Sequence record: KJ019142.1
Length of the DNA: 64,000 nt
Strand: one strand, 5' to 3'
In this document: in pieces, positions 56,710-60,386 of the stretch
How the letters are laid out: every line of letters begins with the position of its first letter
Numbering within the stretch: position 1 is the first letter of the stretch
Made by a program: the position numbers and the translations under genes
Notes under the pieces: generated by a model
Seen by the model: the letters and a program-made list of their open reading frames with translations, nothing else
Database searches by the model: none
Told to the model about the DNA's origin: nothing

Positions 56710-57096
56710 ATGAACAATGATTATGATAGGGAACTTCCTTCCCCAACCGGATCTACGGGGGCAGTTGAACTAATGATTGAATCTATTGACTTGATGAGCA
56801 ACAATGATCCAGTAGTAAAACTAGTTCTACTGAAGAATAATGAAACTATTATTGCTGAGGTTCGTGAGAGTATCGATGGAAGTAGTGTTCAGCTCATTGA
56901 TCCTCGTGTAGTTCTACTACAGGCAGCAAGACCATCTGATGACGGACAGACTACAACAACTGCCATCTCATATACCGACTGGTTACCTTTGTCTGAGAGT
57001 AGAAACTTCACTATTGATGGTGATTATGTGGTCCTTATCACTGATCCCATTGAAAGTTTAGTACAAAGTTATACACAGGCACGACAAAATGGATGA
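56710..57096 (+). CDS. Conserved hypothetical protein (start uncertain)
   Basis: VKLVLLKNNETIIAEV...WLPLS.....I..DYVV.ITDP; usual pre-g43 position. Confidence 0.7.
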   Translation: MNNDYDRELPSPTGSTGAVELMIESIDLMSNNDPVVKLVLLKNNETIIAEVRESIDGSSVQLIDPRVVLLQAARPSDDGQTTTTAISYTDWLPLSESRNFTIDGDYVVLITDPIESLVQSYTQARQNG

Positions 57097-57370
57097 AACT
57101 ATTAGAGTATTGGTCTTGACCAATGGAAAAGTCCTTATCAGTAAGATCGAAGAGATAGGAGGTGCTGATATCGGGGAGCCAGACTGCCGTCTAACCGACC
57201 CAGTATGGTATAATGATGAGGTGGAGGAAATGACCGAAGGGTTCAAACGCTTTCCTGGTAAGGGGATCACACCCGATACCAAGTTGGCCATCTCTTCTGT
57301 CAATATCTTGACTCTGGTTACCCCAGATAATAAACTCCTCAGTGAATACCTCGTGTTTATTAGTGATTAA
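57089..57370 (+). CDS. Conserved hypothetical protein
   Basis: IRVLVLTNGKVLISKIEEIG.ADIGEPDCRLTDP; overlaps its neighbours. Confidence 0.7.
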   Translation: MDETIRVLVLTNGKVLISKIEEIGGADIGEPDCRLTDPVWYNDEVEEMTEGFKRFPGKGITPDTKLAISSVNILTLVTPDNKLLSEYLVFISD

Positions 57371-58845
57371 TGTCTAACAAGTTCTACACCAATGTTCAGC
57401 TTTATGGTAACAACATCCTCCTACGCGGGTATGAGAACGGAGAGAAGTTCCACACTAGGGAACAATACTCCCCTACACTATATGTGAGTTCCAAGAAACC
57501 CAGTAAGTGGAAAACACTTACTGGTGAGAATGTTCAACCAGTGAAGCCCGGATCTATTAGAGATTGTAGGGATTTTATCAAGAAGTATAAAGATGTAGAG
57601 AACTTTAATGTGTTTGGTAATGAGAGGTTTGCCTTTCAATACATTGCAGACAACTATCCTGGGGAGATTGAATATGATCCCCAGTTGATTAATATCTTGA
57701 GTTTGGATATTGAGGTTGAGTCTGAACATGGTTTCCCAGATCCAGAGTCTGCTAATGAGGAAGTACTACTCATTACTATTCAGGACTATGTTACCAAACA
57801 AATCATTACTTGGGGTCAGATAAAGCATGGGGAGTTTGATAACCAACAGGATAATGTAGATTTCCGTCCCTGTGAGAGTGAGTATCACCTACTGAGTGCC
57901 TTTATTCAGTGGTGGCAACAGAACCCACCTGATGTTATCACTGGGTGGAACATTGACTATTATGATATTCCATACCTCGTCAGACGCATGAAGAGAGTGT
58001 TGGGTGATAAACTAGCAAGCACTATCTCCCCTTGGAAGTTCGTAACGGACGAAGAGCACTTCTTCAAGGGTATGAATAAACTATATTATAATATCGCTGG
58101 TATCACCCAACTAGACTACCTAGTTTTATACACTAAGTTCACATATACGAACCAAGAGTCATACAGACTAGACCATATTGCTAACGTGGAGTTGGGTCAG
58201 AAGAAGTTAGACCACTCTGAGTTTGAAACCTTCAAAGACTTCTATCGCAAAGGTTGGCAGAAGTTTGTAGAATACAACATTGTTGACGTGGAACTAGTTG
58301 ACAGACTGGAAGAGAAGTTGAAACTCATTGATCTTGCCATCACTATGGCGTTTGATGCTAAGGTGAACTTCCAGGATGTATTCTCACAGGTGAGACTATG
58401 GGATACTATTATCTACAACTATCTCAGAGATAGGAACATTGTCATCCCTCAGAAGGAACAAACCAGTAAGAGTGAGAAGTTTGCTGGAGCATATGTGAAA
58501 GAACCTAAACCAGGTCTATATGACTGGGTGGTGTCCTTTGACCTTAACTCCCTGTATCCTCACCTACTGATGCAATACAACATCTCCCCAGAAACTCTGA
58601 TGGAAGAGAGATGTCCTAATATCTCCATTGAGAAGGTATTGAATGAGGAAGTGACCTTTGAGATGTATAAAGACTACGCTGTTTGTCCCAATGGTGCAAT
58701 GTATCGCAAAGATGTGCGTGGATTTCTCCCAACTCTGATGGAGAAGATGTATGATGAAAGAAAGGCATTCAAAAAGAAGATGCTGAAGTCCAAACAAATC
58801 CTCGTTGATATCGAGGCTGAAATGAAAAGAAGAGGTGTATTATGA
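57370..58845 (+). CDS. g43A: DNA polymerase gp43, N-terminal half (3'-5' exonuclease, motif A, first finger helix)
   Basis: ExoI DIE, ExoII GWNIDYYDIPY, ExoIII YNIVD, motif A SFDLNSLYPH; ends KKMLKSKQILVDIEAEMKRRGVL-stop. Confidence 0.93.
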   Translation: MSNKFYTNVQLYGNNILLRGYENGEKFHTREQYSPTLYVSSKKPSKWKTLTGENVQPVKPGSIRDCRDFIKKYKDVENFNVFGNERFAFQYIADNYPGEIEYDPQLINILSLDIEVESEHGFPDPESANEEVLLITIQDYVTKQIITWGQIKHGEFDNQQDNVDFRPCESEYHLLSAFIQWWQQNPPDVITGWNIDYYDIPYLVRRMKRVLGDKLASTISPWKFVTDEEHFFKGMNKLYYNIAGITQLDYLVLYTKFTYTNQESYRLDHIANVELGQKKLDHSEFETFKDFYRKGWQKFVEYNIVDVELVDRLEEKLKLIDLAITMAFDAKVNFQDVFSQVRLWDTIIYNYLRDRNIVIPQKEQTSKSEKFAGAYVKEPKPGLYDWVVSFDLNSLYPHLLMQYNISPETLMEERCPNISIEKVLNEEVTFEMYKDYAVCPNGAMYRKDVRGFLPTLMEKMYDERKAFKKKMLKSKQILVDIEAEMKRRGVL

Positions 58846-59000
58846 GTTTTCGTCACAAAACATATGGTGGTCTAGTTCATTATGACCACAATGATAAGAT
58901 TATCGTCATTGAACGTCGATTGAATCCAATGCAACATCACGCTATGCTTGTGAGTAAGTTGAAGGAAGAGTATCCAGAGTATCAAGTAGTTACTGGATAG
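58842..59000 (+). CDS. 52-aa hypothetical protein inside the split g43 (not in the ORF track)
   Basis: ATGA overlap with the g43A stop; SD GAGGTG; MSFRHKTYGGLVHYDHNDKIIVIERRLNPMQHHAMLVSKLKEEYPEYQVVTG. Confidence 0.65.
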   Translation: MSFRHKTYGGLVHYDHNDKIIVIERRLNPMQHHAMLVSKLKEEYPEYQVVTG

Positions 59001-59215
59001 TGAGTGGTTTAGTTGCTGAGATTATGCAAGTCGTTACTATGATTACTATGCTATTCAATATGTGCAATAGTAATGAGTTCAACAGACAAGCATGTATGAA
59101 AGACTGGGATACTTGGTTATTACCTGAGATATCCCGTGCGTGGCAAATTAAAACAGGTCAGGAAGTCCCTTACCAAAACGAGGAAGATGTGGTAGAATGG
59201 CACCAACAGCAGTGA
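59000..59215 (+). CDS. 71-aa hypothetical protein inside the split g43
   Basis: GTG start overlaps the preceding TAG; hydrophobic N-terminus, then C..DWDTWLLPEISRAWQIKTG.EVPYQ. Confidence 0.6.
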   Translation: MSGLVAEIMQVVTMITMLFNMCNSNEFNRQACMKDWDTWLLPEISRAWQIKTGQEVPYQNEEDVVEWHQQQ

Positions 59216-59216
59216 G

Positions 59217-60386
59217 GTGTTTATCGGTTATCTTATTGGTGGTTCGAGTGAAGGACCCGATGAGGAGATTGTACAATCAGATAGTGACTATTCTAAACTA
59301 TCTGATAAGCAACTGCAATACCTAAGAGCACAAACCATAAAGGATATCGCTAAGTTTTATAACTTCCAGCAAGTAAGGAAAATTACCCTAAACTCCGCTT
59401 ATGGTGCTTTGGGTAACCAATACTTCAGATACTACAAACTGGCGAACGCGGAGGCAGTGACCTTCTCTGGTCAGTTAAGTATCCGTTGGATTGAGAATAA
59501 GATGAATGGATTCATCAATGAGATTCTAAAAACAGAGGGTAAGGATTATGTGATCGCCTCTGATACTGACTCTATCTACATTAACTTTGGTGATGTGGTA
59601 GATAAGTTCTTGAAGAAGTTTGATGGTGATAAGGAGAAGACTGTATCAATGGTAGATAAGATCTGTAAGGATCAACTAGAACCCTTCATTGATAAGTGCT
59701 ATTCTCAGTTGGGTGAGTATGTGAATGCATACGAACAGAAGATGCAGATGAAGAGAGAGAATATTGCAGATAGGGGTATATGGACAGCGAAGAAGAGATA
59801 TATCCTGAACGTGTGGGATAGTGAAGGTGTTCGTTATGAGGAACCTAAACTGAAGATGATGGGTATTGAGGCTGTGAAGTCATCTACACCTGCCCCTTGT
59901 AGAACTATGATCAAGGATGCTCTCCGTATTATCATTGAGAAATCTGAGGATGAAGTCATTGACTACATTGATGATTGTAGGAAGAAGTTCAAACAGATGA
60001 AACCAGAGGAGATCGCGTTTCCTCGTTCCGTTAGTGATATGATCAAGTTTCGTTCTGGGACAACAATATATGCTAAGAGTACTCCTATGCATGTGAGGGG
60101 GGCGTTACTATTCAATCATCACATTAAGAAGGGTGGGTTGGAGAACAAGTATTCTCTCATCAATAGTGGTGAGAAGATCAAGTTCTGCTACCTCAAGATT
60201 CCTAATCTAATTGGTGAGAATGTTATCTCATTCATCTCCGACTTTCCTAGGGAACTTAAGTTGGAGAAGTATGTTGATTATGATACCCAATTCAATAAAG
60301 CATTCCTAGATCCACTCAAGATCATCTTGGATGCTATTGGTTGGAACTGTGAGAAGCAGATGTCCTTGGAGTCATTTTTTACCTGA
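59217..60386 (+). CDS. g43B: DNA polymerase gp43, C-terminal half (second finger helix, palm, thumb, clamp-binding tail)
   Basis: Motif B KITLNSAYGALGN; motif C ASDTDSIY; KKRYILNV; C-terminal QMSLESFF clamp peptide. Confidence 0.93.
   Translation: MFIGYLIGGSSEGPDEEIVQSDSDYSKLSDKQLQYLRAQTIKDIAKFYNFQQVRKITLNSAYGALGNQYFRYYKLANAEAVTFSGQLSIRWIENKMNGFINEILKTEGKDYVIASDTDSIYINFGDVVDKFLKKFDGDKEKTVSMVDKICKDQLEPFIDKCYSQLGEYVNAYEQKMQMKRENIADRGIWTAKKRYILNVWDSEGVRYEEPKLKMMGIEAVKSSTPAPCRTMIKDALRIIIEKSEDEVIDYIDDCRKKFKQMKPEEIAFPRSVSDMIKFRSGTTIYAKSTPMHVRGALLFNHHIKKGGLENKYSLINSGEKIKFCYLKIPNLIGENVISFISDFPRELKLEKYVDYDTQFNKAFLDPLKIILDAIGWNCEKQMSLESFFT

Follow-up and report, generated by a model that had tools for sequence, protein, structure and literature searches.

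A T4-type DNA polymerase gene divided at the finger-tip loop, with variable small genes at the junction, in Synechococcus phage ACG-2014f and other marine cyanomyophages

The gp43 DNA polymerase of T4-like phages may be encoded by two genes, and a finger-tip split with variable inserts between the halves is already established for Aeromonas and Acinetobacter T4-like phages. According to papers that summarise the original work, bicistronic gp43 (43A/43B) occurs in Aeromonas phages 44RR2.8t, 31, 25, and 65 and in Acinetobacter phage 133 (PMC3061061, PMC2988022, PMC2677866, summarising Petrov & Karam 2004; Petrov et al. 2006, 2010). The same papers give a gap between the halves of 2 bp to 3 kb, which in phage 25 holds a GIY-YIG endonuclease gene (PMC3061061, PMC2988022, PMC2677866). 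In phage 25, the two parts of the split gp43 purify together and have activity (PMC2988022). Similarly, an engineered Pfu polymerase cut at the finger tip through an AUGA overlap is wild-type-like whether its parts are co-translated or reconstituted (Hansen et al. 2011, PMC3061061). Genes can also be split by free-standing homing endonucleases, as in nrdA/mobE of phage Aeh1 and gene 39/60 with mobA of T4 (PMC2988022), and the "fractured genes" of marine metagenomes rely on split inteins (Dassa et al. 2009, PMC2677866). The PolB of Methanothermobacter thermautotrophicus is described as split at another point with its halves 85 kb apart (Kelman et al. 1999, via PMC2677866, PMC3061061). No paper describing a split of gp43 in a cyanophage was found, most subscription journals lying outside the search. 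Here, such a split is described in a stretch of 64,000 nucleotides from Synechococcus phage ACG-2014f isolate Syn7803C11 (KJ019142.1), referred to as the window, in which position 57370 corresponds to position 119370 of the record and the region is 100% identical to it.

The locus consists of four head-to-tail open reading frames (ORFs) on the + strand, g43A, orfX, orfY, and g43B, which lie at the coordinates that a preliminary description of the sequence had given them, and it is very probably a bicistronic split of the 43A/43B type in a T4-family gp43, broken at the finger-tip loop. The first half, g43A (57370–58845), encodes 491 amino acids (aa) ending in ...EAEMKRRGVL before a TGA stop at 58843–58845 and would supply the N-terminal subunit of a split family-B DNA polymerase; the second, g43B, is an open frame from 59217 to 60386 (389 aa from a GTG at 59217, 387 aa from an ATC at 59223) and would supply the C-terminal subunit. 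Between them lie orfX (58842–59000, 52 aa) and orfY (59000–59215, 71 aa). The ATG of orfX and the stop of g43A overlap in ATGA, and the GTG of orfY and the stop of orfX overlap in TAGTG. In GenBank, both halves are annotated as "gp43 DNA polymerase" and orfX and orfY each as "hypothetical protein".

The domains and motifs of a complete polymerase are distributed over the two halves. The N-terminal and exonuclease domains (Exo I–III), palm motif A (DLNSLYP with a catalytic aspartate, 58540–58560), and the first finger helix are in g43A; the second finger helix with motif B (KITLNSAYG, 59379–59405), palm motif C (DTDS, 59562–59573), KKRY, the thumb, and a conserved C-terminal tail are in g43B, and every catalytic motif (Exo I–III, motifs A, B, and C, and KKRY) is kept. 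In Pfam, g43A matches DNA_pol_B_exo1 (4.7e-25) and DNA_pol_B (positions 19–142), and g43B matches DNA_pol_B (positions 148–254). Sequence matches to T4 and RB69 gp43 in the PDB reach 4e-80 for g43A and 5e-67 for g43B. The break falls in the finger-tip loop, upstream of motif B and with one long finger helix on either side, because g43A aligns to T4/RB69 gp43 up to about residue 490–493 (g43A residue 475 being RB69 493) and g43B aligns from RB69 531 onward (g43B residues 26–388 to RB69 gp43 531–901). In the preliminary description the locus was read as a T4-type family-B polymerase truly split at the fingers, and this reading is supported.

P0073 (855 aa), a naturally unsplit cyanophage polymerase whose finger is long, runs uninterrupted through the split position, and aligning the two halves to it again places the break in the finger-tip loop. 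In an AlphaFold2 model of P0073, from which only the finger secondary structure was used (predicted local distance difference test score, pLDDT, of 51 globally on a shallow alignment and 59–81 in the finger region), helices 444–485 and 496–569 stand around a loop at 486–495, and the break of the split form falls in this loop. Relative to P0073, the split form has about 4 extra residues at the end of g43A and about 25 at the start of g43B. The preliminary description had proposed that new terminal helices form the interface between the two chains; this idea is weakened because the long finger helices are already present in P0073, and hence are not new to the split form, and because one split lineage (L010) does without the leader of g43B entirely. 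That leader (59226–59288) consists of a conserved GYLIGG followed by a variable acidic linker, neither of which is found in L010, and is the most variable stretch among isolates. GYLIGG itself is strikingly conserved in most split alleles, so it may have a docking role. Among isolates, nucleotide diversity (pi) peaks just after the insert, at 0.10–0.14 in 59200–59400 vs about 0.02 in g43A. The substitution tracts in 59200–59400 are mosaic, one isolate (L002) having one cluster in common with L004–L007 and matching the window further on. This mosaic pattern, together with the high pi, suggests recombination or relaxed constraint in the acidic linker.

The closest described counterpart is 44RR2.8t, in which genes 43 (498 aa) and 43B (391 aa) lie 49 nt apart and are broken at the position aligned with the cyanophage break, so the Aeromonas/Acinetobacter precedent that the preliminary description had named holds at the level of the alignment. 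Both phages have the same enzyme family, the same replication-gene neighbourhood, and no intein, and the halves are of similar size (498 + 391 aa in 44RR, 491 + 389 aa in ACG-2014f). The first half ends ...ASRGVKLDH in 44RR and ...KRRGVL in ACG-2014f, and the conserved part of the second half reads ...LSTDELQQM and ...LSDKQLQYL, respectively. The two differ, however, in the junction, where 44RR carries 49 nt of untranslated spacer that supply an AAGAGGA and an ATG of their own, whereas the basic cyanophage form is a stop/start overlap. The cyanophage alleles also differ from 44RR in the conserved GYLIGG with its acidic leader and in that several of them, ACG-2014f included, have ATT or ATC at the expected g43B start, and their cargo, unlike that of the Aeromonas and Acinetobacter phages, includes the non-endonuclease genes orfX, orfY, purM, and purS. 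Split Pfu resembles the ACG-2014f polymerase in being a family-B enzyme cut near the finger tip and made from a bicistronic message with termination-reinitiation at AUGA, but it is artificial and archaeal, with a short finger and no cargo between the halves. The PolB of M. thermautotrophicus is likewise a family-B enzyme of two separately encoded chains without an intein; it differs in being archaeal, in the 85 kb between its halves, and in its split point. The fractured genes of Dassa et al. differ in having split inteins, which are absent from ACG-2014f gp43.

The split is not peculiar to this phage but is a widespread allele class of marine cyanomyophages, present in many that are uncultured. 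A search with g43A returned whole polymerases of 831–835 aa and, from marine metagenomes, many g43A-like proteins of 486–520 aa at 65–80% identity, and all of these shorter proteins share the same kind of tail end. In the window, the extended first finger helix and the g43A tail (58771–58842) end in ...LVDIEAEMKRRGVL, and this tail is common to split alleles of many lineages. When IMG/VR was scanned for an ATG followed by GYLIGG, 88 of the 120 matches listed were true g43B starts, and 74 of these 88 had a recognisable g43A tail upstream; among these listed matches, 61/74 junctions are empty overlaps and 13/74 carry 184–1457 nt of cargo. In the empty state, found in the loci L011–14, L024–26, and L028, the two genes meet in TAATG, where the stop codon of g43A and the ATG of g43B overlap, and the product of g43B begins MGYLIGG. 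Among cultured phages in the collection searched by tblastn, the GYLIGG-type split occurs only in ACG-2014f; S-CAM9, S-PRM1, S-8S56, S-SRM01, DSL-LC02, and Sf-CH8, which were considered as split candidates from the same searches, have one-piece polymerases.

The preliminary description had also regarded the split point as a cargo insertion site. The relatives strongly support this, as the junction is empty in most lineages and is occupied in others by endonucleases, purM, purS, relatives of orfX, or small ORFs. A 234-aa homing-endonuclease homologue (phrog_314, 8e-40, with weak GIY-YIG Pfam matches) stands between the halves at L015:3021-3725 and L023:1585-2289, and an HNH-annotated endonuclease of 151–153 aa (phrog_374, 8.7e-60), met in a second scan, occupies the same slot at L166:1860-2315 and L170:4226-4687; these two putative endonuclease types, GIY-YIG-like and HNH-annotated, are unrelated. 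Behind the HNH-type cargo comes a conserved spacer, about 45 nt long, that contains a TGnTATAAT-like motif; then follow GGAGG and ATT, the first codon of g43B. The endonuclease-bearing loci L015, L023, L166, and L170 thus resemble the Aeh1 and T4 cases in having a mobile endonuclease gene between the cistrons of an essential DNA-metabolism gene, unlike the insert of the window itself. PurM lies in the split site of L038, L090, L096, L114, L141, and L143 (Pfam AIRS 2.6e-21, AIRS_C 1.3e-24) and PurS in that of L030–32 and L141, both above the Pfam cut-offs. In L030–32 the 153-aa PurS-domain protein accompanies an orfX relative; the slot of L010 holds an orfX relative and a 36-aa ORF, and that of L033 holds orfX and orfY as in the window. 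Further IMG/VR cargo includes several small ORFs without assigned function, as well as one that equals the N-terminal portion of the PurS-domain protein. The g43A closest to that of the window outside ACG-2014f (L022; 497 aa, 80% identity) is followed after 20 nt by another ORF, neither orfX nor g43B, at which the contig ends (region L022:2693-2761). A 12-nt string (TAGTGAGTGGTT) of L022 recurs where orfX and orfY of the window meet, but is read there in another frame.

The history of the split allele was traced on a tree built on g43A residues 1–470, which omits the columns of the trait itself. Split and whole alleles interleave on this polymerase tree, the split/whole label needing at least 7 changes, 6 of which are forced by starred branches (Shimodaira-Hasegawa-like approximate likelihood ratio test, SH-aLRT, at least 95). 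A split locus (L028) and a whole one (L029) have flanking DNA that is 85–100% identical around a clean replacement at the finger tip (about 170 nt vs about 40 nt). A recent horizontal sweep of the split cassette was considered and is unsupported; the cassette is for the most part no more similar between lineages than the backbone, which argues that there was no recent endonuclease-driven sweep, although the interleaving on the tree still requires exchange or repeated loss. Because the alleles interleave while the cassette is not unusually similar between lineages, the pattern is that of an old polymorphism moved by recombination and not that of a recent sweep. The sequence to either side of the insert in the endonuclease-bearing loci L015 and L023 is collinear with that of unsplit P0073, and the origin of the split is best explained, on circumstantial grounds, by a free-standing endonuclease gene that would have invaded a long-finger allele.

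The start of g43B in the preliminary description was the GTG at 59217. The open frame from 59217 stands; the GTG is probably misplaced as the start, being confined to the sub-clade of the window, which makes up 17/45 of the ACG-2014f GenBank records (checked in L001 and L036). All 8 of the other isolates read (8/10 ACG-2014f loci read) have GTT there, and in them the frame is open from 59196 with no ATG, GTG, or TTG until 59232 or well inside the finger. A start at 59232 is possible in one of these 8 (L008), and a second such record is indicated. In 26/45 records the annotated start of g43B lies beyond 59300, and in the 7/7 of these that were inspected it corresponds to 59373 or 59409, at or just before motif B, so that these annotated starts remove part of the finger or motif B. 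The codons from 59223 onward (I-G-Y-L-I-G-G) must be translated, because they vary between isolates only synonymously. The usual start of g43B, in the empty alleles and in L033, is ATG-GGT-TAT (MGYLIGG), and the ATC at 59223–59225, which is ATT in some ACG-2014f loci, stands in place of this ancestral ATG as its positional homologue and is the proposed true start. It follows, at a distance of 5 nt, a GAGG astride the orfY stop (59214–59217) that is a likely Shine-Dalgarno sequence for g43B and does not vary among the 10 ACG-2014f loci read. Another six loci in IMG/VR have ATT or ATC as the first codon of g43B at the same spacing, behind GGAGG in five and GGGGGTG in L217, and at least four of the six (L166, L197, L170, and L237) carry the HNH-annotated endonuclease. 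In an ACG-2014f-like IMG/VR locus (L221), the spacer before the ATC is 1 nt shorter, so that the orfY stop is in frame with g43B and the two codons before the ATC are not kept in frame. From these sequence comparisons, the somewhat favoured reading is that g43B starts at the ATC/ATT at 59223, probably aided by termination of orfY 8 nt upstream, and that the GTG of this isolate is an incidental or secondary gain; in this isolate alone, initiation may perhaps also occur at GTG 59217.

The two small ORFs of the window are treated as cargo. Neither has a Pfam match, and in PHROGs they match only families of unknown function (orfX phrog_3538 at 5.6e-43; orfY phrog_3571 and, distantly, phrog_703); in the same two databases they match no endonuclease family, and the insert of the window contains no endonuclease gene. 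An AlphaFold2 model of orfX (pLDDT 78) has a beta-beta-beta-alpha-beta fold that matches only its own family in BFVD, and its best PDB match (E 4e-3, a gelsolin-like domain, root-mean-square deviation 4.9) is unconvincing. The N-terminus of orfY is hydrophobic. Purifying selection acts on all four ORFs. In the two polymerase halves it is seen in the bias of variable sites to codon position 3 among 9 isolates (80/94 sites in g43A and 97/123 in g43B). For orfX, the ratio of nonsynonymous to synonymous substitution (dN/dS) is about 0.2–0.6 (0.18/0.84 vs L030), and for orfY dN is 0.165 and dS 0.915 vs L033. Internal deletion reduces orfY to 34 aa in L221, where orfX is retained. In isolate L003, a patch of about 80 nt of clustered differences lies in orfY (59025–59105) while the remaining insert is almost invariant, and the patch has the appearance of a short stretch acquired by recombination with a diverged allele. 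Relatives of orfX of 46–48 aa also occur in S-N03 (L034:2516-2656) and S-CREM2 (L035:2474-2620), where each immediately follows a DNA adenine methylase gene and overlaps the end of it; a split-type g43B head was not found in S-N03. Members of the orfX family seem to be small ORFs that trail behind genes of DNA metabolism and become attached to them.

That a sequencing or assembly artefact made the apparent split has a negligible probability; nothing was found in its favour, and the layout is identical in 45 separately assembled ACG-2014f isolate genomes in GenBank, which differ by 0–7% in the region (93–100% identity), and is met again in many independent metagenome contigs. The preliminary description had ruled out a single-base error, and both this and simple read-through are excluded because the 371 nt between the halves contain many stops in both frames (11 more in the g43A frame and 6 in the g43B frame). 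It is also very improbable that one continuous chain is produced after all, whether the 371 nt are spliced as a group I intron, bypassed, or crossed by frameshifting, or the halves are joined by protein splicing. T4-type phages do have a 50-nt translational bypass in gene 60, and the change from GTG to GTT at 59217 would be silent if an elongating ribosome read this codon. Group I introns are likewise present in T4-type phages, including gene 43 of phage 25 (PMC2993671). However, no Rfam family, group I introns included, was found at 58500–59600 (E ≤ 10) apart from two chance matches to a miRNA and a snoRNA, the insert RNA folds no better than shuffled sequence (z = -0.68), and the insert codes for two proteins that are under purifying selection and have homologues elsewhere, so a group I intron was rejected. 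The cargo at this site consists of unrelated genes and varies in length between 0 and about 1.5 kb, the g43A frame alone would meet 11 stops, and like splits in 44RR/25 and in Pfu yield two chains (PMC2988022, PMC3061061). Protein splicing fares no better, since no Hint or intein domain was found in either half in Pfam and the residues added relative to P0073, about 4 and about 25, are far too few for a split intein; the preliminary description was correct in seeing no intein here. Still less probable is a decaying, non-functional polymerase in a phage that replicates with another enzyme. The lack of a canonical g43B start in most ACG-2014f records would fit decay, but both halves retain every catalytic motif and their variation is almost confined to third codon positions, dozens of diverged lineages have kept the split allele, and all 45 genomes were deposited as complete genomes of named isolates, presumably viable plaque isolates in the source study.

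The place of the small genes may be read differently. Homologues of orfX stand in the split site directly after g43A, with the ATGA overlap, in the window, L010, L030–32, L033, L112, L118, and L221, and directly before g43B in L092 and L113, and the gene is under purifying selection, with 1 variable site among ACG-2014f isolates and thus nearly invariant; these points would suit a working partner of the split polymerase, such as an assembly factor or third subunit, in place of passive cargo, for orfX and perhaps orfY. Such a role is rather unlikely, as most split alleles have no orfX (61/74 junctions among the matches listed being empty), its place within the split site varies, its relatives in S-N03 and S-CREM2, whose unsplit polymerases lie elsewhere, follow the methylase gene, and no fold or family match points to DNA or polymerase binding. 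A broader proposal would make the split a mobile slot that is spread by homing endonucleases and expresses accessory genes (purM, purS, orfX, and orfY) together with replication, with orfX as a dedicated partner and the AUU/AUC start, behind a strong ribosome-binding site, as a deliberate device setting the subunit ratio or a dependence on the cargo; taken as a whole, it is doubtful.

Under the preferred reading, a finger-tip split of gp43 into two genes, the two halves would be made as separate chains and assemble non-covalently into one enzyme. Its active site would be built from both, with motif A and the exonuclease coming from g43A and motifs B and C from g43B. We infer assembly from two chains because the active site requires both halves, those of the phage 25 polymerase co-purify in active form, and split Pfu is close to wild type. 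The basic form of the split allele is a stop/start overlap, with g43A ending ...KRRG-x-x and g43B beginning MGYLIGG, and the new gene boundary may have become a landing place for free-standing homing endonuclease genes and other small genes, which in ACG-2014f are orfX and orfY. Judging from the arrangement of the letters, the four cistrons of the window are probably chained in translation, each start lying at or next to the preceding stop. Between the halves, sites matching the promoter consensus are no more numerous than in shuffled sequence, and no + strand terminator was found. A GAGG within the Arg-Arg-Gly codons of the g43A tail (58832–58835), 6 nt before the ATG of orfX, is a likely Shine-Dalgarno sequence that would serve that start, and AGAGG or AGGAGG in the tails of other split alleles may act in the same way. 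At the other end of the insert, the orfY stop TGA lies within GAGG, and the ATC 5 nt further on would then provide the start of g43B. Codons of the AGAGG/AGGAGG type encode the conserved Lys/Arg-Arg-Gly end of g43A (58830–58835 in the window; also in L011, L014, L015, L030, and L033). These codons could double as the ribosome-binding site of the next cistron, which would place a dual constraint on the tail.

Several points weigh against parts of this reading. The two chains, their assembly, and the start codon are deduced from sequence and precedent, and the P0073 model is poor overall (pLDDT 51). The insert of the window has no endonuclease gene, cassette identity between lineages is at or below backbone identity in all but two pairs, and this cassette pattern is equally compatible with an old polymorphism and ordinary recombination. 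With regard to the start, AUC and AUU starts are weak in bacteria where measured, and it would be odd for a replicase subunit to rely on one. The isolate of the window has an in-frame GTG two codons upstream of the ATC, and this canonical start is present in 17/45 records, the others having ATC/ATT behind GAGG.

The split gp43 lies within a T4-type replication module, with gp44, gp62, regA, uvsX, and gp41 as neighbours. Immediately upstream of g43A are two overlapping small ORFs (56710–57096, 128 aa; 57089–57370, 93 aa). ORFs of the same size and position upstream of gp43 in relatives carry DUF6561 (PF20198), and this tandem pair precedes gp43 in nearly every cyanophage locus examined.

What is added here to the known splits of gp43 is the abundance of the split in marine cyanomyophages, cargo other than endonucleases, including purM and purS, and a likely AUC/AUU start. 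Since gp43 is a standard marker of marine T4-like phages, it matters that gene callers truncate or mis-start its second half. Phage ACG-2014f on Synechococcus WH7803 offers a cultured system for the assembly of a split family-B polymerase, for AUC/AUU starts, and for the fixation of endonuclease-driven splitting. Genes for homing endonucleases and purine synthesis, together with small genes of unknown function, enter and leave the cut, which thus serves as a slot for them. Replicative polymerases of two chains are known as a curiosity from some T4-like phages of Aeromonas and Acinetobacter; the same split is common in the cyanophages of the sea, a group that ranks with the most abundant viruses of the ocean.

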